A stretch of 64,000 nt of DNA from Fimbriosthenelais zetlandica. Taxonomy: Eukaryota. The notes under the pieces are model-generated. The model did no database searches. It saw only the letters and a program-made list of their open reading frames with translations, and was not told where the DNA came from. Positions 1-19,628 of the stretch are shown here, one piece after another. The translations under genes were made by a program, and so were the position numbers. Each line of letters opens with the position of its first letter. Within the stretch, counting starts at the first letter, position 1. The stretch is taken from assembly GCA_977030845.1 (NCBI GenBank), contig OZ365113.1, positions 26,412,001 through 26,476,000 on the forward strand, read 5' to 3'.

Positions 1-597
1 TCTGCCAGATTCTTCGCCCCCTCTCTTTTCCTATTCTCATTTTACCTTGCCCTCCCACATTAGAACAAGTGATGGAGAAGGTTCTCACGGTATTATTTCT
101 TGTTCATAAATCACAGAAAGCGTGGAAGGGAAGTTCTGAGAGAGAGAAAGAGGAAAATAATTCTTCCGAAATTCTTCTCAAAGTGAGCCATCTCGTAGGG
201 TGATAAAATTAAAGATCTAAAAATGATTTAATATTACCAAAATAAATGTTAACTTCTCAATACTTATCTCTATGAATATAAATAATATAATGAAAGCGCT
301 TTGTATTGCGACTTTCTTAGTACAGGTCTATATATATTTAACTTGATGTCTCCAACGTAATTCCAATCACAATTGTCCAGTATCTTGCAATTATAATTAA
401 GATTACCAAGACTATGGTGAAAACCAAGTATATAAGAACCATCGCTAGAAATTAAGAATAATAAATGGTTCTCTTACTAAAATAGCTGAGAAATACCTGA
501 CTGAACTTTAAGCCACTACATTCACTGACACTGGAGCAGGGCAAAGACAATTACAGTTCATTAAGATTAATTTGTCAATTATTTTGCTATTTTCCAG

Positions 598-3500
598 GCT
601 GACAAAGAGAACCACATACTTCACGTTATTGACACCGGTGTCGGTATGACTAAAGACGAGCTGGTGAATAACCTCGGAACTATAGCCAAGTCAGGAACCA
701 GCGAGTTCCTCCAGAAGGCGGGACAGACCTCTACCGAGTCTGAGACCAGCGACCTCATCGGCCAGTTTGGAGTGGGCTTCTACTCTACTTTCTTGAGTAA
801 GTGAAATCTAAAATGATTTAAAAAAAAAATAAGGCTCAGATCCCTTAGATTGCTTGGTGCTTTTTGCACTCAAATCTGTAAGCCCACAAAAAACTTTTGG
901 CCCCTCTGGACGTTAGCAGCCTTGTATCTGTAATTTCTCTTTAATACTGGCATATTCAGCGTATATTGACAAACTTAATGAGGCAATAATGTTGTCTTTC
1001 AGTTGCTGACCGTGTGATTGTTTCCTCTAAGCACAATGATGACGACCAGTATATCTGGGAGTCGGACGCGGACTCTTTCTCTGTTACCCGTGACCCCCGT
1101 GGTAACACTCTTGGACGTGGTACTCAGATCAGGTAAATTTATTTCCAAGTTTTTGAACTAAAAGGATGGGAATAAATTATTTCTTAGGGAATAGGAAATA
1201 TTGTGATTCGTTTTCATTGAACTCCCATTTATCTATCCCTTTAAAACTTACTTTTAGGAAATAATTTGCATGTATTTTCCCTGTGAAATGTGTTGTAGCA
1301 ACCGATTTTAACGCAGCATTTTGACTCAAACCTGATCTTGTTTTTTTTCAGTTTGCACTTGAAGGAAGAAGCTCACGACTATCTGGAGCAGAACACCATC
1401 AAGGACCTGATCAAGAAGTACTCGCAGTTCATCAATTTCAACATTTATCTGTGGGACAGCAAGGTATGTTTTCAGTTACTTACTCCTGCGGCTTTGTATA
1501 GAAATCTATATAAAAATCGCGTCGTTATATTAGCCGCAGGCCCCGATTTTTTTTGAAAAAGTCCCGGCTTATACACCGGCAAGTACGGTAATGCATTCCA
1601 CCTTCAACTTAACATTAATTTATTTGTATTTAACATATATTTCTAATTTTGTCGTGTGTAGACGGAGCAGGTAGAAGAGCCCATTGAGGACGAGGAAGCC
1701 ACAGACGAGCCTGAGACGGAGGACGAGGAGGAGGAGGAAGACGAGGCTAAGGTGGAGGAGGAAGAGGACAAGCCTAAAACAAAGACAGTAGACCGGACCA
1801 CCTGGGACTGGGTACTCGTCAACGACAACAAACCCATCTGGACGCGCAAGTAAGTATAAATTTATGATTTTTTTGTTTGATAAAATCTTAGCGACTTTTA
1901 TTGAGTTAATATAACTTTAAAATAATCCAAAACTTAGTCTGTGTCAACCCTTAGTATTTCTATGCTAGGGTCATTTAAAGTTTCTTGAAAAAAGTTACAT
2001 TATCCGTGGCACATACTTACGGATCCCCCACCATTTTCTCTGTCTCCAGGCATAGTGAAATCACTGACGACGAGTACAATGAATTCTACAAGAGCTTCGC
2101 GCACGATTCTAATGAGCCCCTGGCTCATACCCACTTTGTGGCCGAGGGAGAGGTGACCTTCCGCTCCATCCTTTATGTGCCTGACGCCTCCCCTAGCGAC
2201 ATGTTCCAGAGTTACGGTAAGAAGTACGACTTCATCAAGATGTACGTGCGCCGAGTGTTCATCACGGATAACTTTGAGGACATGATGCCCAAGTATCTGT
2301 CATTCGTCAAGGGAGTGGTGGACTCTGATGATCTGCCTCTCAACGTGTCACGTGAGACTCTACAGCAGCACAAGCTGCTCAAGGTGATCAAGAAGAAGCT
2401 GGTGAGGAAGACGCTGGATATGATCAAGAAGATTGGCAAGGAAGATTACGAGAAGTTCTGGAAGGAATACAGCACAAAGTAAGTCCCAAGTTCTTATGCA
2501 TGGTAGTCCGATAGGAAAATTTTTGGGTGTCGAACCCTGAATCCTTTATATTCGTATGTTTATTCGATCTTATTACCATATCAGATGGAATAAGTCACTT
2601 TCCATTTGATTTGCCATTGACCTAGACTCCTGTAATGTTCTAGAAAAAATCTAAAAGAAAAAAAATCTTCTACAGTGTACTGGAATACCTGTTATACTCC
2701 TGGAAATGTCCTAGAAATATGATGAAAATGATTGTCCTGTTACCATTGACCGAAAAGATAACTTTTTAGGATAAAATCGAGTAAACTTTCACATCGCTAG
2801 ACTTGCTCATATTCACCTTTGCCTGGTTCTCCATTACAGCATCAAACTTGGTGTGATTGAGGACCATTCTAACCGAACACGTCTTGCCAAGCTTCTGCGC
2901 TTCTACTCGTCTAACTCTGACACCGACCAGACCTCTCTGGCCGACTATGTGGAGCGCATGAAGGAGAAACAGGAGCACATTTACTTGATGGCCGGCAGCT
3001 CACGTGACGAGGTGGAGAAGTCGCCATTTGTAGAACGCCTGCTGAAGAAGGGCTACGAGGTGCTCTTCCTCATAGAACCCGTCGACGAATACTGTATCCA
3101 GGTGCGTACATAAATAAACTTTGCTTTAGCAGGGCTCAAAATATTGGCAAATTATTGTACGGAATTGTTCCGGAATAAATGCACATAGAAAGAGCCCCCA
3201 GCTGAAAATCATACGAGAAACTTGAGTAATCAAGAGTGTGAGCTGGCATTCACCCATAACAAGCTCTATACAAATTCTAACTAACAAAAATAAAAAAAAT
3301 AAGTAGAGCATACTTCAGGAATTTGGGATCACTTAAAAAAATCCAGTACTTCTCCTGTTAACTGTTACACGGATATTTTACACTCGGTGAGATTAACAGA
3401 TTATTCTAATAACAACTTTTTCCATCTCAGGCTCTACCAGAGTACGAATCCAAAAAGTTCCAGAACGTGGCCAAGGAAGGTCTGAAGCTGGACCAGTCAG

Positions 3501-6060
3501 AGAAGGCCAAGGAGCACAAGGAACAGCTGGAGAAGGACTTTGAGCCACTGACTAACTGGCTGAAGGACGAGGCACTGAAGGAGAAGATAGAGAAGGCGGT
3601 GGTTTCTGAGCGCCTGTCTAGCTCACCCTGTGCCCTCGTGGCCTCGTCGTACGGGTGGTCGGGTAACATGGAGAGGATCATGAGGGCTCAGGCCTACCAG
3701 AAACAACAGGACCCTTCACAAAAGTACGTCCATTTACTGTATTTACAGAAATAACAAAAACTGATTTTACCAGCAGATACTTAGTGTCGCTTAGTGCTAC
3801 CAGGTACCATTAAAAAGTTGGCACAGGTTTTTCAAGAAAATCAAAAGCCAGCCATGTATCCCTGGATCTGGATCTGGAATGTTAGTTGGTAAATTCCCAT
3901 ATTAAATTATATGTTGGGATGTCACGCCTGGGATATCCCCACTGAGATCCATGAAAATGAACTATTGCTGATATTCGAGAGCTGATATTTTGTGCCGACC
4001 CCCGCTCCCAATATTGTGAAACGACCCCTTTATCATACTTGATTTTTGTCCATTTCAGTTACTACGCGAACCAGAAGAAAACCCTGGAGATCAACCCCCG
4101 CCATCCTCTGATCAAGGAGTTACGTAACCGTGTAGAGAAGGATAAGGAGGACCAGACGACCGTCGACCTGGCCACCGTCCTGTTTGAGACAGCCACACTC
4201 CGCTCTGGTTATAACATCAAGGACTCGGCCACCTACGCCGACCGCATCGAGAGGATGCTACGTCTCTCCATGGACGTCGCCCTCGATGAACAAGTGAGTT
4301 CTTTTGGCTCTATGTACTTTAGTTTTGGCTCACTGGATGTTTGTTTTGGCTCAAAGAAGCTTAGTTTTGGCTCAAAGTAGCTTAGTTTTGGCTCAAAGAA
4401 GCTTAGTGTTGGCTCAAAGAAGCTTAGTTTTGGCTCAAAGAATATTATCTTTGGCTCAAGGAATATCGTTTTTGTCTCAAAGAAGCTTGGTTTGGGCTCA
4501 ATGGAATTCAGTTGTGGCCTAAAGAAAATGTTAGGTTCAGTGGAGCTTAAGTTTGTCCCAATGTATTACATAAAACTCCCTCAAACTGTTCATATTCCCT
4601 TCCATAATTATACTTCAACCTTAGAAAAATGCTTAACGTTATCATAAGCAATGCAGGGCCCCTGACTCCCTGAACATGTTGAATTTTACAAATTGCGACA
4701 TTTCCGTCTGCAGGTGGAGGAGGATCCATTTGAGGTTGAAGAAGAAGCGGAGGAGGACGAGGAAGGAGAGGAGGAAGAGGTAGATGCTGAAGAGGGGGAA
4801 GAGGATGAACCTGCTGGAGAAGATTCTACTGAAGATGAAGCAGCCAAGGTAAGAGCTGATGATAATATGATGTACACAACCCAAATATATCGACATTTGC
4901 TAATCGTGTGGGTGTGCGTGCAAGGCATAATATTTATTACCTACATCATAACAATTATTATAACATTTGATCTCAAGGACACATTTTTTTAAAAGTTTTA
5001 ACCATTTTAAGATCAACCATTTTCATTTTAGAACCGCTTATCCACCAAAAATTTTATGGAATTTTGAATTTATATTTTATCCTAAGTAGATCTACCAGAA
5101 ATTTTTAATTTCAAAACTATAAAGTACAACGAAGTAAGACTTTAGATAATTTTCTCGTTCTTTATTGCTGCTGTAGATCTTTAACGCAATATTATAGATT
5201 CGTTAGTCCTTTGGAGTATTTTGACTAAATTAATTCATCAAAGCTGTCAATGACACCTAAAAAACATACAAAGACAATAATTCTCTAATCGCATGGTTTG
5301 ATAGTTACTGCTGAAGAGTTGTGGATTTAATTTTTGTTGTTCTTGAGACACCGTGCCTCTCGCGCGGTAAGATCTCACATTTTCTTGTTTGCTGAATGAC
5401 GTTTGACCAGAACCAATACCCGATATCAGCTTCCTATGCCTCTCAAAGTTGGCTCTCCAAGGATCCTCAGAGCTTTCCCATGTTGCCTATTTCAACTTTT
5501 AAAATTTATTATTTTAAGAATAAAGATGATCATCTTCAAGTAACTGAAGGGTTTTTTGAAGATTTAGAAAAAATGAGTTCTCAAAGTTAGGACAGGCAAG
5601 GGTGCTTTGCGAAGCGTTATAGTGCATGTGTGCATTCACTTTAGCCCTGCAAAACTAGAGGCGGTGCGAGGATGAAAAACTATCCTCAAAATCCTAGTAG
5701 CAGCGTCCGTAACTCTGAAAGAAACCATAATAATTTATGAATCAATCTTTCACAGTTATTTTTTCAAGCTGCACCCAGTTACTTTGAGAATGCCTTTCTT
5801 TGAGAACTTAATCATAAAGTATTAAGCATTTTTCTTGCAAGTTACTAACAAATTCCCCGTTCCCCTGTTTGTGAGCATTTGACTTGTGAGGTCATTGGAA
5901 GAAAGCAATAGGAGCAATAGCGCCACTTGTGACAGGTAAGGGAAGCTGGTCTTCAGGTAGAGGAAATGGTCAACTATATGAGAGGATAAAAAACACATAC
6001 TTACAGAAGTGCCTGGGTTGTTTTTGTTTGCAGAAGGAGGAAGATCATGATGAGTTGTGA
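598..6060 (+). CDS. HSP90B1: Endoplasmin / GRP94 (ER HSP90 paralogue), 5'-partial, 10 exons in window
   Basis: Hand-spliced GT-AG exons 598-796, 1003-1132, 1352-1463, 1662-1849, 2050-2478, 2840-3101, 3431-3723, 4059-4293, 4714-4848, 6034-6060 keep one frame (661 codons plus the terminal exon). HSP90 signatures: [28 protein letters not shown], acidic linker, [25 protein letters not shown]. The C-terminal HDEL marks the ER paralogue. Upstream exons lie outside the window. Confidence 0.97.
3190..3300 (-). repeat. Dispersed repeat family A, copy 1 (HSP90B1 intron)
   Basis: agagcccccagctgaaaatc...caagagtgtgagctgg(c/t)attcacccataaca(a/g)gctctata recurs at about 49620-49712 in the same orientation and inverted at about 47545-47640. 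Confidence 0.8.
4300..4520. repeat. 21-bp minisatellite (aagaagcttagttttggctca), about 10-11 degenerate copies, in HSP90B1 intron
   Basis: Directly visible tandem units, most homogeneous in the centre. Explains the shadow ORF 4304-4522 (LAQRSLV repeats). Confidence 0.9.
6034..6060 (+). CDS. HSP90B1: Canonical terminal micro-exon of endoplasmin (KEEDHDEL*)
   Basis: Acceptor tttttgtttgcag at 6021-6033, then AAG GAG GAA GAT CAT GAT GAG TTG TGA. Phase 0 matches the donor at 4848. AATAAA hexamers follow near 6970 and 7039. Confidence 0.93.
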   Translation, partial: KEEDHDEL

Positions 6061-8265
6061 TGACGTACATATGATGACGTACCTATATCACCATGACAGC
6101 GTGGACTTTGATACGACTGTCATGTCACGTCGAGAATGAATGTGGTCTTAAGGACGAAGCGATCCGAAGAATTTGCATCCCAAAGTAGTTGATCTGCACA
6201 TGCACAGAGAAAATATCATTGACATTACTCTAGAGTCTGGACATTGTTCCAAAAAATAATCTGTGATGTGCTCACGATAGTCTGGTCCTATAGGCTTTGT
6301 ATGTCTATGTATAGGCCTTCATGCTATCAGTTTGAAACATGGTTTCAAGGTTCAACATCTGAAACCCGATCATTACATTCCCTGTGGAAATTCTCCGGGA
6401 TCACTCACAAATATTATGTAAAAAAAAAAAAAAAAAGAAATGTATATTATTTATCACTGAGCCTCACAGTCTGTGTAGGTGTCAGTTATTCCATTCCATA
6501 GAAGGGAAGCTGTCGTGGCACGTTTTGTGTAGTGACTCTGTATTCACAGCGTGGATGGCTTGTTTAGGCGTGTGAGATAGAGGGTGGGTCTGCTTAAAAT
6601 TTAAACAGTCCTTATGACCACCATTCAGCTTTAAAAGAAAATCAGTCCATTTTTCTTGTTACGTGTGGGGGAATTTAGAGTGTGGGGGGGAAGGGTAGCT
6701 CACAGAGGGAGAGACGCGCTGGTTTACTTGTGATTTGACACAAGATAACTTAATGCAGTCTCATCCAAAATATGAAGGGGAAAAAAATTAGGGAAACATT
6801 CCAGTTGTGAATGAGGTATGTTGCTTTGGTTTGTTTGTTTTTTTGTTTCAAGAATATTGATAAAAAAAAATCAGTTATGTCTGGAGAAATTGACGTTTGG
6901 ATGAATGAGATTTCATATCGCTTAATGTGCAGAAAAGGTACGAAAGAAATTCATTGCATCGTTCTCAGAAATAAATTACATATATGGTCAGAAGGAAGAA
7001 GCGCTGGCGATAGAAACTCGTGTAGGTATGAAAGTGAAAATAAAGAATGTTTCTATTTATATTAAATTGGTCTTTTTAATGACTTGTTACTACATTTTAT
7101 GGCCTAAAGCAGGCGGAGAAAAACGTGTGTAAAAAAACAAAAAGAAATGGAATACCCCGAAAATTGTGGAAATTGCCAGCTTGAGTTGGATGTTGGTTTT
7201 CACGTGATTATAGAGAAAAAAATGGCTTTATTCGAAATTGTTTGGAGGGGTTTCAGTCTTTGAACTTTAAGTTTTCTTAATTTCCAACCCAAAGCAATAT
7301 CAATATAACAATTTATTCTGGGTTTGCACGATAATTAAATATCTATTCATTTCTATGGGTGCAAAAATACAATAACAAGTGACCGTACCTCGGGCAGGTG
7401 TGGGTAGGTGGTATGGCCCAAGGTCTGAGGGTACATGGAAAGATGTCCAGAAGGCAAGGGACATCCGTCCACCCTCAGTCAGAGGGCTATACCACCTACC
7501 CAGACCTGCCCGATGTCAGTTCTAAATGCTATGCATATTCCTACCGTTCATAGTAATCTGCCGAAGGCTGTATCAAATGCAAAACTAAAGATAAAGAGAG
7601 TAGTGAGGGAGAAAGTCAGTTTGGACAGGAGACACAAGTCCACATGGAGACAGATGTTGATAAATGACAGTATACAAGTGTAGACATAAAGATGGTACAA
7701 CACAATGTGACAAGACAGATAGTAGGGAGAGTGCTCGGGGAGAGAATTCCAGCACGATGCTGTGGAGTAGCATGGGGCTCAGTGATTAGGCACAGGGGTT
7801 TAACTAATTCTCTTGTGCTTGATGGATCATACATGTAGAGTTAGGTTTTCCGTCGGCGAGCGGGGAAATATTGAGACTATTGAGGAGGAGATAGGGCCTA
7901 AAAATGAGCTGCTCTTATGCCATGAATGCCAGCTGCTCGCCATGAGGTTCAGGTAACGTAACTTATTACTCATGGATTTATAGCGTGTTATAGAACTGAT
8001 AAATGAAGGTAATAGAAGAGCGCGGCCAAAGGAAACGTTAAATTAGACAGTCAAAAACTATCTGAATTCACAAAAAGTGAAGGTAAGGAATTAAAATATG
8101 CATGGAGTTGATATTGCTACTGTTTCACATTGTGTGAGTTTAATTACCTAGTATCCTATCCTACTATTAATGTATGAATATAAAAATCACATGTCATGAA
8201 GTCTCAGTCAGTTTTTAAACAATGGTGCACAAAATTATTAATCTAATGTTTAATATTCTATCCAG

Positions 8266-11200
8266 GAAACCTGTTCTTGGTGTAGAAGAAAGCTAATGGC
8301 AGCTCCCGAAGAAACAAGAAAGAAACCCAACACTGTATTGAAACAAAGTCATCATAAAAGAGGCAAGGTTCCAGCAGGGGCAGACCCGCGAGTTGACATA
8401 GACAAAGACGGACTTCCTGACTTCATGGATGAAGATGATGATGGCGACGGCATTCCAGACTACCTAGATGAAGATGCTGACGACAATGGACTCTTGGATA
8501 AATACGAGGACGATGATGGAGATGGTATTCCAGATTACCTAGATATTGATGATGATGGGGATGGCATTCCAGATGATAAAGACAAAATACATGACGTTCC
8601 TGGATTTGGGCCTGTAGATGACATCAAAGACACAGATGGTGATGGCATACCAGATCACCATGACGACGATGACGATGGGGACGGTATTCCTGATTCCATG
8701 GAGGTAGATACAGATGGAGATGGTATCCCTGACTACCTAGATGATGACGATGATGGAGACGGTATTCCAGATCACCTTGACAACGATGATGATGGTGATG
8801 GTATTCCTGATGATCAGGAAGATAAAGATGGGGATGGCATCCCAGACCATCTAGATGATGATGACGATGGGGATGGTATTCCAGATGATGCTGAAATCGA
8901 CACAGATGGAGATGGTATCCCTGACTACTTGGATGATGACGATGATGGAGATGGTATTCCAGATCACCTTGACAACGATGATGATGGTGATGGAATTCCT
9001 GATGATCAGGAAGACAAAGATGGGGATGGCATCCCAGACCATCTAGATGATGATGACGATGGAGATGGTATTCCAGATGACCATGAAATCGACACAGATG
9101 GAGATGGTATCCCTGACTACCTAGATGATGACGATGATGGAGACGGTATTCCAGATCACCTTGACAACGATGATGATGGTGATGGTATTCCAGATGATCA
9201 GGAAGACAAAGATGGGGATGGCATCCCAGACCATCTAGATGATGATGACGATGGGGATGGTATTCCAGATGATGCTGAAATCGACACAGATGGAGATGGT
9301 ATCCCTGACTACTTGGATGATGACGACGATGGAGATGGTATTCCAGATCACCTTGACAACGATGATGATGGTGATGGTATTCCTGATGACCAAGAAGATG
9401 AAGATGGGGATGGCATCCCAGACCATCTAGATGATGATGACGATGGGGATGGTATTCCAGATGACCATGAAATCGACACAGATGGAGATGGTATCCCTGA
9501 CTACTTGGATGATGACGATGATGGCGATGGTATTCCAGATCACCTTGACAACGATGATGATGGTGATGGAATTCCAGATGATCAGGAAGACAAAGATGGG
9601 GATGGCATCCCAGACCATCTAGATGATGATGACGATGGGGATGGTATTCCAGATGATGCTGAAATTGACACAGATGGAGACGGTATCCCTGACTACTTAG
9701 ATGATGACGATGATGGAGATGGTATTCCAGATCACCTTGACAACGATGATGATGGTGATGGTATTCCTGACGACCAAGAAGATGAAGATGGGGATGGCAT
9801 CCCAGACCATCTAGATGATGATGACGATGGTGATGGTATTCCAGATGACCATGAAATCGACACAGATGGAGATGGTATCCCTGACTTCTTGGATGACGAC
9901 GATGATGGAGATGGTATTCCAGATCACCTTGACAACGATGATGATGGTGATGGTATTCCAGATGACAAGGAAGACAAAGATGGGGATGGTATCCCTGACC
10001 ATCTAGATGATGATGACGATGGTGATGGTATTCCAGATGATGCTGAAATCGACACAGATGGAGATGGTATCCCTGACTACTTGGATGATGACGATGATGG
10101 AGATGGTATTCCAGATCACGTTGACAACGATGATGATGGTGATGGTATTCCAGACGATCAGGAAGATGAAGATGGGGATGGTATCCCTGACCATCTAGAT
10201 GATGATGACGATGGAGATGGTATTCCAGATGACCATGAAATCGATACAGATGGAGATGGTATCCCTGACTACTTGGATGATGACGATGATGGAGATGGTA
10301 TTCCAGATCACCTTGACAACGATGATGATGGTGATGGTATTCCTGATGATCAGGAAGATAAAGATGGGGATGGCATCCCAGACCATCTAGATGATGATGA
10401 CGATGGAGATGGTATTCCAGATGACCATGAAATCGACACAGATGGAGATGGTATCCCTGACTACCTAGATGATGACGATGATGGAGACGGTATTCCAGAT
10501 CACCTTGACAACGATGATGATGGTGATGGTATTCCTGATGATCAGGAAGACAAAGATGGGGATGGCATCCCAGACCATCTAGATGATGATGACGATGGAG
10601 ATGGTATTCCAGATGACCATGAAATCGACACAGATGGAGATGGTATCCCTGACTACCTAGATGATGACGATGATGGAGACGGTATTCCAGATCACCTTGA
10701 CAACGATGATGATGGTGATGGTATTCCAGATGATCAGGAAGACAAAGATGGGGATGGCATCCCAGACCATCTAGATGATGATGACGATGGGGATGGTATT
10801 CCAGATGATGCTGAAATCGACACAGATGGAGATGGTATCCCTGACTACTTGGATGATGACGATGATGGAGATGGTATTCCAGATCACCTTGACAACGATG
10901 ATGATGGTGATGGTATTCCAGACGATCAGGAAGATGAAGATGGGGATGGCATCCCAGACCATCTAGATGATGATGACGATGGGGATGGCATTCCAGATGA
11001 CCATGAAATCGATACAGATGGAGATGGTATACCTGACTACTTGGATGATGACGATGATGGAGATGGTATTCCAGATCACCTTGACAACGATGATGATGGT
11101 GATGGTATTCCAGATGATCAGGAAGACAAAGATGGGGATGGCATCCCAGACCATCTAGATGATGATGACGATGGGGATGGTATTCCAGATGATACTGAAA

Positions 11201-14200
11201 TCGACACAGATGGAGATGGTATCCCTGACTACTTGGATGATGACGATGATGGAGATGGTATTCCAGATCACCTTGACAACGATGATGATGGTGATGGTAT
11301 TCCAGACGATCAGGAAGATGAAGATGGGGATGGCATCCCAGACCATCTAGATGATGATGACGATGGAGATGGTATTCCAGATGACCATGAAATCGATACA
11401 GATGGAGATGGTATCCCTGACTACTTGGATGATGACGATGATGGAGATGGTATTCCAGATCACCTTGACAACGATGATGATGGTGATGGTATTCCAGATG
11501 ATCAGGAAGACAAAGATGGGGATGGTATCCCAGACCATCTAGATGATGATGACGATGGGGATGGTATTCCAGATGATGCTGAAATTGACACAGATGGAGA
11601 TGGTATCCCTGACTACTTGGATGATGACGATGATGGAGATGGTATTCCAGATCACCTTGACAACGATGATGATGGTGATGGTATTCCAGACGATCAGGAA
11701 GATGAAGATGGGGATGGCATCCCAGACCATCTAGATGATGATGACGATGGGGATGGCATTCCAGATGACCATGAAATCGATACAGATGGAGATGGTATCC
11801 CTGACTACTTGGATGATGACGATGATGGAGATGGTATTCCAGATCACCTTGACAACGATGATGATGGTGATGGTATTCCAGATGATCAGGAAGACAAAGA
11901 TGGGGATGGTATCCCTGACCATCTTGATGATGATGACGATGGGGATGGTATTCCAGATGATGCTGAAATCGACACAGATGGAGATGGTATCCCTGACTAC
12001 TTGGATGATGACGATGATGGAGATGGTATTCCAGATCACCTTGACAACGATGATGATGGTGATGGTATTCCAGACGATCAAGAAGATGAAGATGGGGATG
12101 GCATCCCAGACCATCTAGATGATGATGACGATGGGGATGGTATTCCAGATGACCATGAAATCGATACAGATGGAGATGGTATCCCTGACTACTTGGATGA
12201 TGACGATGATGGAGATGGTATTCCAGATCACCTTGACAACGATGATGATGGTGATGGTATTCCAGACGACAAGGAAGACAAAGATGGGGATGGTATCCCA
12301 GACCATCTAGATGATGATGACGATGGGGATGGTATTCCAGATGATGCTGAAATTGACACAGATGGAGATGGTATCCCTGACTACTTGGATGATGACGATG
12401 ATGGAGATGGTATTCCAGATCACCTTGACAACGATGATGATGGTGATGGTATTCCTGATGACCAAGAAGATGAAGATGGGGATGGCATCCCAGACCATCT
12501 AGATGATGATGACGATGGAGATGGTATTCCAGATGACCATGAAATCGACACAGATGGAGATGGTATCCCTGACTACTTGGATGATGACGATGATGGAGAT
12601 GGTATTCCAGATCACCTTGACAACGATGATGATGGTGATGGTATTCCAGATGATCAGGAAGACAAAGATGGGGATGGCATCCCAGACCATCTAGATGATG
12701 ATGACGATGGGGATGGTATTCCAGATGATGCTGAAATTGACACAGATGGAGATGGTATCCCTGACTACTTGGATGATGACGATGATGGAGATGGTATTCC
12801 AGATCACCTTGACAACGATGATGATGGTGATGGTATTCCTGATGACCAAGAAGATGAAGATGGGGATGGCATCCCAGACCATCTAGATGATGATGACGAT
12901 GGGGATGGTATTCCAGATGACCATGAAATCGACACAGATGGAGATGGTATCCCTGACTACTTGGATGACGACGATGATGGAGATGGTATTCCAGATCACC
13001 TTGACAACGATGATGATGGTGATGGTATTCCAGATGATCAGGAAGACAAAGATGGGGATGGCATCCCAGACCATCTAGATGATGATGACGATGGGGATGG
13101 TATTCCAGATGACCATGAAATCGACACAGATGGAGATGGTATCCCTGACTACCTAGATGATGACGATGATGGAGACGGTATTCCAGATCACCTTGACAAC
13201 GATGATGATGGTGATGGTATTCCAGACGATCAGGAAGATGAAGATGGGGATGGCATCCCAGACCATCTAGATGATGATGACGATGGGGATGGTATTCCAG
13301 ATGACCATGAAATCGATACAGATGGAGATGGTATCCCTGACTACTTGGATGATGACGATGATGGAGATGGTATTCCAGATCACCTTGACAACGATGATGA
13401 TGGTGATGGTATTCCAGATGATCAGGAAGACAAAGATGGGGATGGCATCCCAGACCATCTAGATGATGATGACGATGGGGATGGTATTCCAGATGATGCT
13501 GAAATCGACACAGATGGAGATGGTATCCCTGACTACTTAGATGATGACGATGATGGAGATGGTATTCCAGATCACCTTGACAACGATGATGATGGTGATG
13601 GTATTCCAGACGATCAAGAAGATGAAGATGGGGATGGCATCCCAGACCATCTTGACAATGATGATGATGGGGATGGTATTCCAGATGACCATGAAATCGA
13701 CACAGATGGAGATGGTATCCCTGACTACTTGGATGAAGACGATGATGGAGATGGTATTCCAGATCACCTTGACAACGATGATGATGGTGATGGTATTCCA
13801 GATGATCAGGAAGACAAAGATGGGGATGGTATCCCAGACCATCTAGATGATGATGACGATGGGGATGGTATTCCAGATGACCATGAAATCGACACAGATG
13901 GAGATGGTATCCCTGACTACTTGGATGATGACGATGATGGAGATGGTATTCCAGATCACCTTGACAACGATGATGATGGTGATGGAATTCCAGATGATCA
14001 GGAAGACGAAGATGGGGATGGCATCCCAGACCATCTAGATGATGATGACGATGGGGATGGTATTCCAGATGACCATGAAATCGATACAGATGGAGATGGT
14101 ATCCCTGACTATTTGGATGATGACGATGATGGAGATGGTATTCCAGATCACCTTGACAACGATGATGATGGTGATGGTATTCCTGATGACAAGGAAGACA

Positions 14201-17200
14201 AAGATGGGGATGGTATCCCAGACCATCTAGATGATGATGACGATGGTGATGGTATTCCAGATGACGCTGAAATCGACACAGATGGAGATGGTATCCCTGA
14301 CTACCTAGATGATGACGATGATGGTGATGGTATTCCAGATCACCTTGACAACGATGATGATGGTGATGGAATTCCAGATGATCAGGAAGACGAAGATGGG
14401 GATGGCATCCCAGACCATCTAGATGATGATGACGATGGAGATGGTATTCCAGATGACCAAGAAATTGACACAGATGGAGATGGTATCCCTGACTACTTGG
14501 ATGATGACGACGATGGAGATGGTATTCCTGATCACCTTGACAACGATGATGATGGTGATGGTATTCCAGATGATGCTGAAATCGACACAGATGGAGATGG
14601 TATCCCCGATCATTTAGATGATGACGATGATGGAGACGGTATTCCAGATCACCTTGACAACGATGATGATGGTGATGGTATTCCAGATGATCAGGAAGAC
14701 AAAGATGGGGATGGCATCCCAGACCATCTAGATGATGATGACGATGGGGATGGTATTCCAGATGACCAAGAAATTGACACAGATGGAGATGGTATCCCTG
14801 ACTACTTGGATGATGACGACGATGGAGATGGTATTCCAGATCACCTTGACAACGATGATGATGGTGATGGTATTCCTGATGACCAAGAAGATGAAGATGG
14901 GGATGGTATCCCAGACCATCTAGATGATGATGACGATGGGGATGGTATTCCAGATGACCATGAAATCGACACAGATGGAGATGGTATCCCTGACTACTTG
15001 GATGATGACGATGATGGAGATGGTATTCCAGATCACCTTGACAACGATGATGATGGTGATGGTATTCCTGATGACAAGGAAGACAAAGATGGGGATGGCA
15101 TCCCAGACCATCTAGATGATGATGACGATGGGGATGGTATTCCAGATGACCAAGAAATTGACACAGATGGAGATGGTATCCCTGACTACTTGGATGATGA
15201 CGATGATGGAGATGGTATTCCAGATCACCTTGACAACGATGATGATGGTGATGGTATTCCTGATGACCAAGAAGATGAAGATGGGGATGGCATCCCAGAC
15301 CACCTAGATGATGATGACGATGGGGATGGTATTCCAGATGACCATGAAATCGACACAGATGGAGATGGTATCCCTGACTACTTGGATGATGACGATGATG
15401 GCGATGGTATTCCAGATCACCTTGACAACGATGATGATGGTGATGGAATTCCAGATGATCAGGAAGACAAAGATGGGGATGGCATCCCAGACCATCTTGA
15501 TGATGACGATGATGGCGATGGTATTCCAGATGATGCTGAAATTGACACAGATGGAGATGGTATCCCTGACTACTTGGATGATGACGATGATGGAGATGGT
15601 ATTCCAGATCACCTTGACAACGATGATGACGGTGATGGTATTCCTGATGACCAAGAAGATGAAGATGGGGATGGCATTCCAGACCATCTAGATGATGATG
15701 ACGATGGGGATGGTATTCCAGATGACCAAGAAATTGACACAGATGGAGATGGTATCCCTGACTACTTGGATGATGACGATGATGGAGATGGTATTCCAGA
15801 TCACCTTGACAACGATGATGATGGTGATGGAATTCCAGATGACCAAGAAGATGAAGACGGGGATGGCATCCCAGACCATCTTGACAATGATGACGATGGG
15901 GATGGTATTCCAGACGATCAAGAAATTGACACGGATGGAGATGGTATCCCTGACTACTTGGATGATGACGATGATGGAGATGGTATTCCAGATCACCTTG
16001 ACAACGATGATGATGGTGATGGTATTCCTGATGACAAGGAAGACAAAGATGGGGATGGCATCCCAGACCATCTAGATGATGATGACGATGGGGATGGTAT
16101 TCCAGATGACCAAGAAATTGACACAGATGGAGACGGTATCCCTGACTACTTGGATGATGACGATGATGGAGATGGTATTCCAGATCACCTTGACAACGAT
16201 GATGATGGTGATGGTATTCCTGATGACCAAGAAGACAAAGATGGGGATGGCATCCCAGACCATCTTGACAATGATGACGATGGGGATGGTATTCCAGATG
16301 ACCAAGAAATCGACACAGATGGAGATGGTATCCCTGACTACTTGGATGATGACGATGATGGAGATGGTATTCCAGATCACCTTGACAACGATGATGATGG
16401 TGATGGTATTCCAGATGACAAGGAAGACAAAGATGGGGATGGCATCCCTGACCATCTAGATGATGACGACGATGGGGATGGTATTCCAGATGACCAAGAA
16501 ATTGACTCAGATGGTGATGGCATTCCTGATCATTTAGATAATGACGATGATGGAGATGGTATTCCAGATCACCTTGACGATGATGATGATGGTGATGGTA
16601 TTCCTGACGACAAAGAAGACAAAGATGGGGATGGTATCCCAGACCGTTTTGACAACGATGACGATGGGGATGGTATTCCAGACGATCAAGAAATTGACAC
16701 AGATGGAGATGGTATCCCTGACTACTTGGATAATGACGATGATGGAGATGGTATTCCAGATCACCTTGACAATGATGATGATGGTGATGGTATTCCTGAC
16801 GACAAAGAAGACAAAGATGGGGATGGCATCCCAGACCATCTTGATGATGACGATGATGGAGATGGTATTCCAGATGACCAGGAAATCGATTCAGATGGTG
16901 ATGGTATCCCTGATCATTTAGATAATGACGATGATGGAGATGGTATTCCAGATCACCTTGACAAAGATGATGATGGTGATGGTATTCCAGATGACAAAGA
17001 AGACAAAGATGGGGATGGTATCCCTGATCATATTGATCATGATGATGACGGGGATGGTATTCCTGATGACATGTCCATCACAGATTTTCCACCACAATTG
17101 AATAAGGATGCAGACCATGATGGTATTCCTGATTATCTTGATGACGATGATGACAACGATGGCATTCCTGACTACCTTGATGAGGACGATGATAACGATG

Positions 17201-17964
17201 GAGTTCTTGACATTGATGAAAAATACTGGAAGGACTTCGACGGGGATGGAATTCCTGACTGGGAAGATGACGATGATGATAATGATGGAATTCCAGACGA
17301 TGAAGATAGTGACGATGATAATGATGGAATACCTGACCACCTGGAATCTTTGGGACCTGACGCTTGTTTAATAGCGAAATGTGAGGAAGAGGAACCTGCA
17401 GAATCCCTTGTAAGCAGGGTAATTAAATCACTTAAAAGTATGATTTACCTTGACGATGATGAAGAGTTTGAGCCAGAGCCCGAACCCGAAGAGGATTTAG
17501 ATCTTTGGGAAATGATCACATCTTTCATTTTGGGAGATGATGACAAGGTAGGAGAATCAGACTCTTCTAGTAGTAATGCTAATCGCGAATCAGAAGGACA
17601 CACATATAAAGCCACAAAGCGGAAGCTCCTCAGCATCAGTTTAGATCAAAATAATAACAAAGCTAAAAATATCAAAGACACTGTGATTCCAAAACAGAAA
17701 CCAGCAGGGAAGGGGGACTCAAAAAATTTAAAACAAAAACAAATTAAGTCTACTGTGAAACAGACCTCAAAAGTGGAACAAAATGATGAGGATGCAACTG
17801 TGGAGGTAGAGGAAGATTCAGAGACAGTCACAGCTGCAGAGGAAGAGTCGAAGACAAATATTCCAGCTCTTATAAGATATTACATAGACCAAACAAAGGA
17901 GCATCTTCATCACATATTCCATAAAATAATTAATCATATTGGCTTCGAGGAGGAGACTCGGTGA
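8266..17964 (+). CDS. Giant Asp-rich protein or exon (about 3,230 aa) of TSP type-3-like DGDGIPD Ca2+-binding repeats; candidate alternative last exon of HSP90B1
   Basis: Uninterrupted 9.7-kb ORF (first ATG at 8296). The frame is open back to the acceptor ttctatccag|G at 8265/8266, with branch-point-like CTAAT at 8243-8247 and an in-frame TAA at 8251-8253. Variation between repeat units is mostly synonymous (gat/gac, ggt/gga/ggg/ggc, cca/cct), which indicates selection on the protein. Coding status is well supported, but its attachment to HSP90B1 is inferred. Confidence 0.85.
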   Translation, partial: ETCSWCRRKLMAAPEETRKKPNTVLKQSHHKRGKVPAGADPRVDIDKDGLPDFMDEDDDGDGIPDYLDEDADDNGLLDKYEDDDGDGIPDYLDIDDDGDGIPDDKDKIHDVPGFGPVDDIKDTDGDGIPDHHDDDDDGDGIPDSMEVDTDGDGIPDYLDDDDDGDGIPDHLDNDDDGDGIPDDQEDKDGDGIPDHLDDDDDGDGIPDDAEIDTDGDGIPDYLDDDDDGDGIPDHLDNDDDGDGIPDDQEDKDGDGIPDHLDDDDDGDGIPDDHEIDTDGDGIPDYLDDDDDGDGIPDHLDNDDDGDGIPDDQEDKDGDGIPDHLDDDDDGDGIPDDAEIDTDGDGIPDYLDDDDDGDGIPDHLDNDDDGDGIPDDQEDEDGDGIPDHLDDDDDGDGIPDDHEIDTDGDGIPDYLDDDDDGDGIPDHLDNDDDGDGIPDDQEDKDGDGIPDHLDDDDDGDGIPDDAEIDTDGDGIPDYLDDDDDGDGIPDHLDNDDDGDGIPDDQEDEDGDGIPDHLDDDDDGDGIPDDHEIDTDGDGIPDFLDDDDDGDGIPDHLDNDDDGDGIPDDKEDKDGDGIPDHLDDDDDGDGIPDDAEIDTDGDGIPDYLDDDDDGDGIPDHVDNDDDGDGIPDDQEDEDGDGIPDHLDDDDDGDGIPDDHEIDTDGDGIPDYLDDDDDGDGIPDHLDNDDDGDGIPDDQEDKDGDGIPDHLDDDDDGDGIPDDHEIDTDGDGIPDYLDDDDDGDGIPDHLDNDDDGDGIPDDQEDKDGDGIPDHLDDDDDGDGIPDDHEIDTDGDGIPDYLDDDDDGDGIPDHLDNDDDGDGIPDDQEDKDGDGIPDHLDDDDDGDGIPDDAEIDTDGDGIPDYLDDDDDGDGIPDHLDNDDDGDGIPDDQEDEDGDGIPDHLDDDDDGDGIPDDHEIDTDGDGIPDYLDDDDDGDGIPDHLDNDDDGDGIPDDQEDKDGDGIPDHLDDDDDGDGIPDDTEIDTDGDGIPDYLDDDDDGDGIPDHLDNDDDGDGIPDDQEDEDGDGIPDHLDDDDDGDGIPDDHEIDTDGDGIPDYLDDDDDGDGIPDHLDNDDDGDGIPDDQEDKDGDGIPDHLDDDDDGDGIPDDAEIDTDGDGIPDYLDDDDDGDGIPDHLDNDDDGDGIPDDQEDEDGDGIPDHLDDDDDGDGIPDDHEIDTDGDGIPDYLDDDDDGDGIPDHLDNDDDGDGIPDDQEDKDGDGIPDHLDDDDDGDGIPDDAEIDTDGDGIPDYLDDDDDGDGIPDHLDNDDDGDGIPDDQEDEDGDGIPDHLDDDDDGDGIPDDHEIDTDGDGIPDYLDDDDDGDGIPDHLDNDDDGDGIPDDKEDKDGDGIPDHLDDDDDGDGIPDDAEIDTDGDGIPDYLDDDDDGDGIPDHLDNDDDGDGIPDDQEDEDGDGIPDHLDDDDDGDGIPDDHEIDTDGDGIPDYLDDDDDGDGIPDHLDNDDDGDGIPDDQEDKDGDGIPDHLDDDDDGDGIPDDAEIDTDGDGIPDYLDDDDDGDGIPDHLDNDDDGDGIPDDQEDEDGDGIPDHLDDDDDGDGIPDDHEIDTDGDGIPDYLDDDDDGDGIPDHLDNDDDGDGIPDDQEDKDGDGIPDHLDDDDDGDGIPDDHEIDTDGDGIPDYLDDDDDGDGIPDHLDNDDDGDGIPDDQEDEDGDGIPDHLDDDDDGDGIPDDHEIDTDGDGIPDYLDDDDDGDGIPDHLDNDDDGDGIPDDQEDKDGDGIPDHLDDDDDGDGIPDDAEIDTDGDGIPDYLDDDDDGDGIPDHLDNDDDGDGIPDDQEDEDGDGIPDHLDNDDDGDGIPDDHEIDTDGDGIPDYLDEDDDGDGIPDHLDNDDDGDGIPDDQEDKDGDGIPDHLDDDDDGDGIPDDHEIDTDGDGIPDYLDDDDDGDGIPDHLDNDDDGDGIPDDQEDEDGDGIPDHLDDDDDGDGIPDDHEIDTDGDGIPDYLDDDDDGDGIPDHLDNDDDGDGIPDDKEDKDGDGIPDHLDDDDDGDGIPDDAEIDTDGDGIPDYLDDDDDGDGIPDHLDNDDDGDGIPDDQEDEDGDGIPDHLDDDDDGDGIPDDQEIDTDGDGIPDYLDDDDDGDGIPDHLDNDDDGDGIPDDAEIDTDGDGIPDHLDDDDDGDGIPDHLDNDDDGDGIPDDQEDKDGDGIPDHLDDDDDGDGIPDDQEIDTDGDGIPDYLDDDDDGDGIPDHLDNDDDGDGIPDDQEDEDGDGIPDHLDDDDDGDGIPDDHEIDTDGDGIPDYLDDDDDGDGIPDHLDNDDDGDGIPDDKEDKDGDGIPDHLDDDDDGDGIPDDQEIDTDGDGIPDYLDDDDDGDGIPDHLDNDDDGDGIPDDQEDEDGDGIPDHLDDDDDGDGIPDDHEIDTDGDGIPDYLDDDDDGDGIPDHLDNDDDGDGIPDDQEDKDGDGIPDHLDDDDDGDGIPDDAEIDTDGDGIPDYLDDDDDGDGIPDHLDNDDDGDGIPDDQEDEDGDGIPDHLDDDDDGDGIPDDQEIDTDGDGIPDYLDDDDDGDGIPDHLDNDDDGDGIPDDQEDEDGDGIPDHLDNDDDGDGIPDDQEIDTDGDGIPDYLDDDDDGDGIPDHLDNDDDGDGIPDDKEDKDGDGIPDHLDDDDDGDGIPDDQEIDTDGDGIPDYLDDDDDGDGIPDHLDNDDDGDGIPDDQEDKDGDGIPDHLDNDDDGDGIPDDQEIDTDGDGIPDYLDDDDDGDGIPDHLDNDDDGDGIPDDKEDKDGDGIPDHLDDDDDGDGIPDDQEIDSDGDGIPDHLDNDDDGDGIPDHLDDDDDGDGIPDDKEDKDGDGIPDRFDNDDDGDGIPDDQEIDTDGDGIPDYLDNDDDGDGIPDHLDNDDDGDGIPDDKEDKDGDGIPDHLDDDDDGDGIPDDQEIDSDGDGIPDHLDNDDDGDGIPDHLDKDDDGDGIPDDKEDKDGDGIPDHIDHDDDGDGIPDDMSITDFPPQLNKDADHDGIPDYLDDDDDNDGIPDYLDEDDDNDGVLDIDEKYWKDFDGDGIPDWEDDDDDNDGIPDDEDSDDDNDGIPDHLESLGPDACLIAKCEEEEPAESLVSRVIKSLKSMIYLDDDEEFEPEPEPEEDLDLWEMITSFILGDDDKVGESDSSSSNANRESEGHTYKATKRKLLSISLDQNNNKAKNIKDTVIPKQKPAGKGDSKNLKQKQIKSTVKQTSKVEQNDEDATVEVEEDSETVTAAEEESKTNIPALIRYYIDQTKEHLHHIFHKIINHIGFEEETR
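8660..17050 (+). repeat. Coding tandem array, 192-bp unit (64 aa), about 43 full units plus one 117-bp short unit, with a 384-bp super-period in parts
   Basis: Unit = DGDGIPDYLDDDD / DGDGIPDHLDNDD / DGDGIPDDQED[K/E] / DGDGIPDHLDDDD / DGDGIPDD[A/H/Q]EIDT. Shadow ORFs in the track recur every 192 bp, with one 309-bp step (14423 to 14732). Confidence 0.97.
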
Positions 17965-19628
17965 GAGTTATGGATGCAGAATAGAATTACTGAATAATTG
18001 CTCATTACATGAATTTTTCCAATGGATGATCATTAGGAAAATGTGGACCATTCCCAGTGTATGAATGTTCATATCACTCTTCACGCTTTCTAAGTGGCGT
18101 TTCCAGGATAAAGAGTATATGACAAGAGTCGTATTTGGTCCTCTAAGTTGCTACATCTGTTAAAATTGGTCATTTAAAAAAAATCGGGGTATGAATTCAT
18201 CCTCCCTCCATAAGAAGATTATAGGGAGAAGAATATGTCAGAGAATTTGCATGGTCCAAAGGGACTATTTCTGGAGGTAGAGAAAAGTTGCAAGGATGAG
18301 AGTTGCAACTATAAGGAAGCATTATAAGATTCATCAACCGTATTTCAATGCATATATAGAGCTTGGTCATTTGAATCGGATATGCCAGGTCTATTCTGTC
18401 TGAATGGAAGAAAGGGATGTGCACTCGAGCGGATACTAGTGGTTATATAATGTCTTTAAGGAATGATTGGTACCTATGTTCAATAATTATCCCAAAGAGT
18501 TAACTAACGGGATCCTCGGGAATGATTCTTGACGGCTAAAGTGTACCTATGCGGGCCCATTCTCATCGGTTAGACATCATGAATCGTAGAAATGTCATGA
18601 CCATTTCTCCCATTAGAGGTAACGAAACCAAGCTAAGTGTGAAGCAAGACGTCCCCGCCTGAGAACGGGTCCATGGCTTAGTGGTTCTTTTTTCCTGACT
18701 TCCACCAACACACCAACACTGCAGAACCAGCCTCGTTATTAAGAACCTCGCTAAGCAGCTACAAAGGCCACTCTAATTGTCAGAATCATTTTAACTAAGA
18801 GACTTTTTATTTAATTGTTGGCACATTTTTAAAGGTCCATATATTGTACATCGACCCAAGAAAATGGGTTAAGTGCATGATGTAATGAATAACAATCATG
18901 GCCCAATAATCATGAAATAACTATGGTTTGTTATACTCAGGAAACAAGTGTAAAATCTTGGGACGAAGAGATGTATAACGTAAATGATTAAGTTACTTTT
19001 AAAAGTGATGTTTTTCGTCTTGATTATTCGTGACACTTAAAGTCATGTTTTACTTAAATGATAATCTATTAAATCTATTAAAAAGAAACGTCAAACATGT
19101 GCCTGTAGAAATAATCCCCTTGAGCATGGTGCTGCTTCTATTTGTATATATAGTATTATGACACATGCAATGTATGATCCTGCAGATTTTTGTATGGGAT
19201 GAAAATCATGAGTTGTTACTATGGCACGTGATTTTAATTAAATGTTTTTGTGAGCGAGAGCGGGAGAGAGCGTGAGAGAGACGGATGGAGACAAAACTTA
19301 TACCGTACCTGTCATGTTACATGTTGATGGATCAGGTGTCACTGAAATTTCCATTCAGGAAATCAGTGCAAGTCAAGATTTGGATGTTTGCCAGACAGGA
19401 AATCTCAATAAAAATTGGCAAAAAAAGTACTATACTCCCTACTTCGTTTTTTAAATCTTAATGACGTATGCAAATTATTTTTATTAAATTATTAAATTTT
19501 AAAAATAAAACTTCTAGTACATTAATAGGCCTAAATCATTTTCGTGAAATAGTCCGTATTTGTGTGTGTGGTGGCAGTGAGGGCGGAGTGGAAGTGCTGC
19601 CCCCTGCCCCCCTCTCCCAACCACCGGA

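Follow-up and report, generated by a model that had tools for sequence, protein, structure and literature searches.

A probable pair of alternative last exons in an invertebrate HSP90B1 (endoplasmin) gene: an HDEL exon and a giant exon encoding a calcium-binding type polyanion

The stretch of DNA analysed here, 64,000 nucleotides (nt) of contig OZ365113.1 of Fimbriosthenelais zetlandica (assembly GCA_977030845.1, positions 26,412,001 to 26,476,000 of the forward strand; hereafter the window), contains on its plus strand the 3′ two-thirds of the gene for endoplasmin (HSP90B1/GRP94), followed by an exon of about 9.7 kb that encodes an Asp-rich polyanion. The relation of this exon to the chaperone gene is the subject of this report. 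The N-terminal exons and the signal-peptide region lie upstream of the window, and the first ~135 residues of HSP90B1 are encoded 5′ of its start. Comparison with Schistosoma mansoni endoplasmin (P0331) by tblastn revealed eight collinear blocks between positions 592 and 4296, which correspond to residues 136-744 and share 40-71% identity. The top PDB matches of a 142-residue exon were endoplasmin chains (E-value 3.5e-63), other HSP90 proteins scoring 5e-46 or weaker. The gene upstream of the polyanion is the endoplasmic reticulum (ER) paralogue of HSP90, and its fluke orthologues have a hydrophobic N-terminus. Features of the window are summarized in Table 1.

The penultimate, acidic exon of the chaperone is bordered by the acceptor gcag/GTG (4713/4714) and the donor GCC AAG/gtaaga (4848/4849), the latter in phase 0. 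It is followed by a very short exon encoding KEEDHDEL and a stop codon. The order that marks HSP90B1, an acidic C-terminal stretch and then a KDEL-type retrieval signal, is present, and use of this exon would give the canonical ER-retained form. A second acceptor, ttctatccag/GAA (8265/8266), opens a frame that is continuous with ATG 8296, and an in-frame TAA (8251-8253) lies 15 nt 5′ of it. The acceptors of the HDEL exon and of the distal exon are both canonical, each with 67% pyrimidines at positions -20 to -3. Structural marks of alternative last exons are found at this locus: a donor that would be common to both endings, a poly(A) signal behind the proximal terminal exon and a distal acceptor of the same phase. 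An earlier, sequence-only reading of this DNA had described the phase-0 acceptor at 8266, its CTAAT and the upstream stop; these are seen in the sequence, and every coordinate given in that reading was correct when the window was read directly.

The tail encoded from ATG 8296 onwards comprises 3222 amino acids (aa), 43% of them Asp, with 229 DG(I/V)(P/L)D motifs, 230 matches to D.D.DG and 2 Cys. Tandem Repeats Finder resolved the array into a 39-nt unit (~219 copies) and a 192-nt super-unit (43 copies, 92% identity, no indels). Differences between adjacent 192-nt units number 180, 104 and 434 at codon positions 1, 2 and 3, respectively; since most of them fall on third positions, the array is under constraint at the protein level. 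Pfam recognised TSP3_bac in the tail (35-38 bits, cut-off 25) and nothing else in the window tail or in a fluke tail; no TSP_C domain was found in the window tail. In a phmmer search the array matched the type 3 repeats of COMP (3fby, 4.7e-11) and TSP-2 (1yo8, 4.6e-7). Exact look-up of the 3222-aa open reading frame (ORF) returned no record, and an ESM Atlas search with the tail gave a best score of 0.59, with no meaningful match. The last 208 residues are non-repeat and lack an xDEL signal. Besides a Cx4C pair and an RKLLSI motif, they include the block ES..RVI..LKS...EEDLDLWE..TS.ILG, with an amphipathic stretch at the C-terminus.

A bacterial origin of the array was considered and rejected, as the bacterial matches are limited to the motif and the array lies inside an intron-bearing animal gene, with the Kazal, Tudor and G protein-coupled receptor genes as animal neighbours. 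Many ORFs of 101-127 aa occur on both strands at 11731-16839; they are by-products of the GAT/GAC-rich repeat, with Ser/Ile-rich antisense frames, and are not genes.

Table 1. Features of the window, with positions counted from its first letter
Feature	Position	Strand	Remarks
Endoplasmin internal and C-terminal-domain exons	592-4296	+	tblastn and PDB matches
Penultimate acidic exon	4714-4848	+	135 nt = 45 codons, read directly
Proximal terminal exon, KEEDHDEL-stop	6034-6060	+	27 nt; gcag/AAG GAG GAA GAT CAT GAT GAG TTG TGA
3′ untranslated region of the HDEL exon	6061-7080	+	poly(A) signals AATAAA 6970, AATAAA 7039, ATTAAA 7061
Spacer, intronic in the putative long form	7081-8242	+	no conserved exon, no phase-0 ATG exon with signal peptide
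Distal-acceptor region	8243-8265	+	branch-point-like CTAAT (8243-8247), pyrimidine tract, AG
Coding codons ETCSWCRRKL before the ATG of the ORF	8266-8295	+	n = 10; motif CxxC(R/H)R(K/L)L, kept at the exon start of all relatives
Rest of the distal terminal exon	8296-17964	+	3222 codons and stop (17962-17964); ORF reading
Repeat array, ~220 thirteen-residue DxDxDGIPDxxD units in 64-residue super-units	8627-17067	+	Tandem Repeats Finder
Non-repeat tail	17338-17961	+	aligned with relatives P0136 and P0140 (alignment A3)
ORF with two Kazal-type protease-inhibitor domains	28500-29004	-	Pfam Kazal_2, 3e-17
Tudor-domain protein exons, past a Pro/Ser-rich exon	35310-38450	+	Pfam TUDOR, 2.8e-13
Single-exon 668-aa rhodopsin-type G protein-coupled receptor with long C-terminal tail	42550-44556	-	7tm_1, 27 bits, just under the Pfam cut-off
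364-aa ORF with proline-rich PPP(I/L)(H/Y)APP repeat at its end	57096-58190	+	no Pfam match

Four loci were compared at the DNA level: the window, a locus of a related invertebrate (L004) and those of the flukes Paragonimus westermani (L001) and S. mansoni (L005). They represent three lineages and share one order, all on one strand: an acidic exon with a phase-0 donor, an xDEL mini-exon and a polyanion exon. The non-fluke relative was found through a search with the tail (protein P0136), and its locus lies on a 352-kb ENA contig. In L004, an HSP90 exon (1-104) is followed by the acidic exon (416-564), which ends GAA AAG/gtatgt in phase 0, by KEEDHDEL-stop (1969-1995), identical in peptide to that of the window, and by the tail acceptor at 9971. 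A reverse-transcriptase (RVT_1) insertion was identified between the HDEL and tail exons of L004 (5437-8288); with it, the two exons lie 8 kb apart instead of 2.2 kb, and the layout is undisturbed. Within the repeats of this locus, a frame change at 19147-19443 (9705-10001 of L002) splits the tail ORF into ORFs of 3048 aa and 347 aa; this could stem from misassembly of a repeat, from a small intron or from a true frameshift. Two cysteine pairs are present in both invertebrates, in a protein otherwise free of cysteine: CxxC at the start of the exon (window 8266-8295, L004 9971-10000) and Cx4C at the start of the non-repeat tail (CLIAKC and CDQENC; window 17370-17390, P0136 residues ~167-172). 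These pairs may form interchain disulfides or bind metal.

The P. westermani locus has compact endoplasmin exons, the donor AAG GAT/GTAAGT (5659) and the mini-exon VSKPSDAKDEL-stop (5751) with AATAAA close by; 15.3 kb farther on it reads gaaacag/ACG AAC CAG TCT TGC CCT ACA TGT CGC CGG CTG CTC (20961). In S. mansoni the donor GAT/GTAAGT (4136) precedes the mini-exon ENQSSSPKDEL (4220) and tail exons at 12682 and 17224, the second of which begins ITSDCPTCRR. Schistosomes have an extra coding exon of 43 residues (IHGVTEFYDNENNW...; L005 12682-12810) between the KDEL and CPTCRRLL exons; it is conserved in S. japonicum, whereas the Paragonimus model and the window lack it. Paragonimus and Schistosoma belong to the two main branches of Digenea. 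Because the fluke loci show the same layout, this layout is old and no accident. The endoplasmin of the window is only ~55-60% identical to the fluke protein, which points to deep conservation and not to recent transfer.

The tails themselves also share features. An RKLL(S/A)(I/V) motif, which resembles the RR(K/L)L(M/L) of the exon start, is found in the window (KRKLLSIS, ~17590-17610) and in the fluke proteins P0003 (1105), P0009 (830) and P0286 (~908); it lies in the C-terminal tail in the window, but in flukes it occurs close to where the tail has its N-terminal end. The C-termini (alignment A2) read VNRVLRWIExxVGVE in flukes and IFHKIINHIGFEEE in the window. The shared motif and, more loosely, the C-terminal stretch argue for orthology of the tails. 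A search of other genomes with the non-repeat ends, proposed in the sequence-only reading, was positive: the tail lies 3′ of HSP90B1 in L004 and in two fluke genera.

Where translation of the distal exon begins is crucial for its assignment. Across ATG 8296 the window reads ETCSWCRRKL-MAAPEE. L004 has ctctaatctcttctag at the position matching 8243-8265 of the window, and its acceptor tctcttctag/GAAACCTGCACATGGTGCCACCGCAAGCTTATGGCA, whose AG is part of an in-frame TAG, opens ETCTWCHRKL-MAVPEK. Within the ten codons before the ATG, the changes from the window to L004 are TGT>TGC twice, AGA>CGC, CTA>CTT, TCT>ACA (Ser>Thr) and AGA>CAC (Arg>His). To judge from these codons the pattern is codon-like, being mostly synonymous or third-position. 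In flukes, CPTCRRLL follows 2-4 codons past a canonical acceptor, the open stretch upstream of it holds no ATG, and there is no nearby downstream Met. Among the nine sequences of alignment A1, R and L are invariant and both cysteines are present in eight. The RR(K/L)L kept without exception at the joint could mark a site of processing or sorting, at which the tail is released or directed. At the five loci inspected, the frame shuts 0-10 codons 5′ of the acceptor and this stretch is free of ATG, so that the distal exon has the form of an internal exon, coding from the acceptor on and without a start of its own. As the ten codons preceding the ATG are conserved as protein in L004 and flukes, coding begins at the acceptor, and an upstream coding exon ending in phase 0 is therefore needed. 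The earlier assignment of ATG 8296 as the start of the ORF is probably wrong.

The same region bears on the best of the rival explanations, in which the polyanion is a separate neighbouring gene with its own promoter in the 1.2-kb gap, translated from ATG 8296 into a cytosolic or nuclear polyanion, and in which its linkage to HSP90B1 is conserved gene order only. The gap past the poly(A) signals could house a promoter, and the ATG is kept in L004. However, the protein-level conservation of the ten preceding codons starts at a canonical acceptor and extends to flukes, whose exons have no such ATG. Moreover, the Kozak context of ATG 8296 is weak (C at -3), and 15 other ATGs lie in the 400 nt preceding it. 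When window 4000-8700 was compared with L004 1-10400, repeats aside, only the endoplasmin, acidic and HDEL exons, the poly(A) block, and the acceptor with the first 20 tail codons aligned. The poly(A)-signal block (7036-7077, 42 nt; L004 2863-2904; 74% identity, E-value 0.007) is the sole aligned stretch between the two endings, and no block aligns from there to the acceptor, which leaves the gap without a conserved element. All ATG-started, phase-0 segments ending in GT or GC within 6061-8262 were enumerated, and a donor was taken as usable at a score of at least 3. Only two segments, MPAARHEVQ and MK, had such a donor; these are not signal peptides and show no conservation. The type-3-like calcium sites, together with the cysteine pairs of the fluke repeats, would also be more in keeping with a location in the lumen or outside the cell than in the cytosol. 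We consider a separate gene unlikely.

Gene models with the same composition are present in databases. A search with the N-terminal region of the tail returned fluke proteins of 2,800-3,300 residues with HATPase_c and HSP90 domains, ranked above bacterial repeat proteins, each of which has ..CPTCRRLL.. after the acidic end of its endoplasmin part. With the conserved region of the fluke tail as the query, every eukaryotic match also carried the HSP90 domain (PF00183). Models that combine tail and HSP90 were found in five Paragonimus species, Opisthorchis, Clonorchis ("Endoplasmin", "variant 2"), nine Schistosoma species (including S. mansoni XP_018651354 and S. japonicum "Endoplasmin isoform 1/2"), Trichobilharzia and Calicophoron; exact look-up of the S. 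bovis model returned no record. HSP90 precedes CPTCRRLL in all annotated fluke isoforms found, and the sole signal peptide on offer for the tail is that of GRP94. The fluke repeats carry paired cysteines, as do true type 3 repeats, and an oxidising secretory compartment would fit for this reason.

The canonical 796-aa KDEL protein is represented by cDNA AAF66929 and 49 Logan contigs, and the two forms diverge exactly after ...SSQID. The S. japonicum cDNA SJCHGC05256 falls inside the tail, short of the junction, which indicates that the tail is transcribed. Logan members of the fluke clusters were rejected as support for the long form, being genomic read-throughs or the 796-aa KDEL form. Smp_030300 of S. 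mansoni has been listed as "endoplasmin" or "putative thrombospondin" and was later renamed Smp_340630 (PMC9559072). Its isoforms Smp_030300.3 and Smp_030300.4 (1743 and 2126 aa, "putative thrombospondin") are database entries of a proteomic study (PMC4723143). The miracidium proteome supplement of that study lists the giant isoforms with a "unique = 1" column that is not isoform-specific; six predicted tail peptides were not found in this supplement, which gives no peptide sequences. No paper describing the fluke endoplasmin-tail fusion was found; the fusion exists as annotation only, and the fluke "endoplasmin" or "thrombospondin" models of 2,000-3,300 residues seem never to have been discussed in print.

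We regard it as likely that HSP90B1 of this animal can end in either of two alternative last exons, one encoding HDEL and the other the polyanion tail. The structure is supported by coding from the acceptor onwards, the shared gene order and phase, the lack of a conserved private first exon and the HSP90-fused fluke models. The proposal of the sequence-only reading that one HSP90B1 donor serves two last exons has thus gained comparative evidence, with the 4848>8266 junction itself still a prediction. Several observations weigh against it. The Met after the CxxC motif is kept in the window and in L004, which is compatible with an internal start. Gene predictors join start-less exons to the upstream gene, and the fluke models are therefore not independent transcript evidence. 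A search for junction-spanning fragments (P0001:690-900) yielded only a canonical S. japonicum KDEL cDNA fragment, and the Logan assemblies contain the 796-aa KDEL form on its 49 contigs and no junction-spanning member; since both searches show the KDEL form alone, the long form would be rare or poorly assembled. Finally, Smp_030300 is among the genes trapped by the spliced leader (SL), with a mean of 1988.5 reads, counted per gene and given without the position of the site (PMC5832876).

The last of these points is the basis of another explanation, in which the tail is expressed without GRP94 from a different 5′ partner: a spliced leader with a 3′-terminal AUG in flukes and an unrecognised small first exon here. 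Internal acceptors past long introns are often trans-spliced (PMC5832876), an AUG in the flatworm leader has been described as an initiator (Cheng et al. 2006, as cited in PMC5832876, reference 16), and a phase-0 acceptor would place such an AUG in frame. However, the SL site of Smp_030300 may be at the 5′ end of the chaperone, annotated fluke isoforms all keep HSP90 before the tail, SL trans-splicing is not known from molluscs, and neither the window nor L004 has a conserved candidate first exon. The product would also be devoid of a signal peptide, yet the fluke repeats carry paired cysteines. This explanation appears improbable. Still less credible is an occasional, functionless read-through (conjoined transcript) at 4848>8266, with the tail expressed otherwise or not at all, which would accord with the dominance of the KDEL form in public assemblies and with the outcome of the fragment search, but not with a 9.7-kb open frame whose third-position-biased divergence and conserved N- and C-terminal non-repeat parts show it to encode a selected protein, with a tail that lacks a private start 5′ of conserved codons, or with a same-strand adjacency kept between this animal and flukes.

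If HSP90B1 has two last exons, a transcript would either use the proximal 3′ splice site and the poly(A) site that goes with it or be spliced to the distal acceptor. In most transcripts position 4848 would be spliced to the 27-nt HDEL exon and the RNA cleaved near 7040-7080, giving ER-retained GRP94. In the long form, the HDEL exon and its poly(A) site would be skipped and 4848 joined to 8266. The long product would have the signal peptide, ATPase, client-binding and dimerisation domains of GRP94, the acidic linker, and then ETCSWCRRKL and ~3,200 residues with ~229 thrombospondin-type-3-like calcium-binding motifs, and would lack HDEL. Solved thrombospondin structures hold about two Ca2+ per motif. 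The tail would reside in the ER lumen or the secretory pathway, and each chain would bind as many as a few hundred Ca2+. As the long form keeps the dimerisation domain, dimers with HDEL-bearing GRP94 could form and retain it in the ER as a calcium buffer of very high capacity; a long-form homodimer, devoid of HDEL, could instead leave the ER or be secreted. Possible roles proposed in the sequence-only reading are a calcium store of the ER or sarcoplasmic reticulum and a secreted mineralisation matrix. Interchain disulfides may form in this product through the joint CxxC and the tail Cx4C, the latter also present in the relative.

The closest known counterparts are the fluke giant models, such as S. 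mansoni Smp_030300 = Smp_340630 (XP_018651354), Clonorchis sinensis KAG5444747 and P. westermani KAA3676735. Shared with them are the HSP90B1 body, the acidic linker, the CxxCRRxL exon start, hundreds of DxDxDG(I/V)PD motifs, the C-terminal amphipathic motif ending in G(V/F)E and the xDEL mini-exon between the shared donor and the tail exons. The fluke tails, however, comprise 15-25 exons over 60-80 kb, with long basic or Ser/Thr-rich spacers and cysteine-bearing repeats, whereas the window tail is one 9.7-kb exon, nearly cysteine-free and with a far more regular array. Thrombospondins and COMP have the same DxDxDGxxDxxD calcium-binding motif, but in 13 copies against ~229; the tail has no flanking cysteines, EGF domain or C-terminal lectin-like domain, and it would be attached to a chaperone. 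Since the repeat cysteines and the C-terminal domain are missing, the tail is not a thrombospondin. Bacterial TSP3 repeat proteins (PF18884; OmpA-, T9SS- and gliding-motility-associated giants) also have long cysteine-free arrays of the DGIPD type, but they are surface proteins with other anchoring domains, and a match in a short motif is no proof of common descent.

Alternative last exons that alter the C-terminus and the sorting of a protein are known from calcitonin/CGRP, membrane versus secreted IgM and ASPH/junctate. The locus resembles these switches in that a single donor faces two terminal exons, a proximal one that carries a poly(A) site of its own and a distal one, and it resembles ASPH/junctate in that an ER gene would give rise to an acidic luminal calcium-binding form. 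Unlike them, it would remove an ER-retrieval signal from a chaperone and add a tail four times as large as the chaperone itself. The tail can further be compared with calsequestrin, the C-domain of calreticulin and HRC, which are likewise very acidic, with presumed low-affinity, high-capacity binding in the lumen of the ER or sarcoplasmic reticulum; it has no sequence relation to them, shows ordered motif sites in place of diffuse acidic runs, and its luminal location is putative. GRP94 is itself a luminal calcium-binding protein. From the type of motif and from GRP94 as the sole source of a signal peptide, we infer that the tail may serve as a luminal calcium buffer of high capacity.

Flatworms have calcareous corpuscles, and molluscs have calcium cells or a shell. 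Tentatively, and with more doubt than conviction, we suggest that HSP90B1 may be an ancient two-product locus common to flukes and this invertebrate, with GRP94, which brings the signal peptide and dimerises, as the carrier of a giant type-3-repeat calcium polyanion, and that the product could seed or buffer intracellular calcium concretions.

Few ER chaperones have been studied as much as GRP94, whose gene is treated as having a single product that ends in KDEL. If the gene does have two last exons, its second ending would trade retention for hundreds of ordered calcium sites and, in spiralian animals, would unexpectedly link protein folding with the storage of ER calcium and perhaps with the formation of mineral. 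Such a gene would also account for the odd fluke annotations as "endoplasmin" or "thrombospondin" of 2,000-3,300 residues, and the present comparison extends the giant-endoplasmin layout of flukes to a second animal group, together with the logic of its gene structure. With the junction 4848>8266, the diagnostic peptide ETCSWCR and an expected product of >400 kDa now defined, the question is directly testable. Should the tentative role in calcium concretions also hold, ER calcium handling and biomineralisation would gain an arm that has not been described before, and GRP94 a new function.

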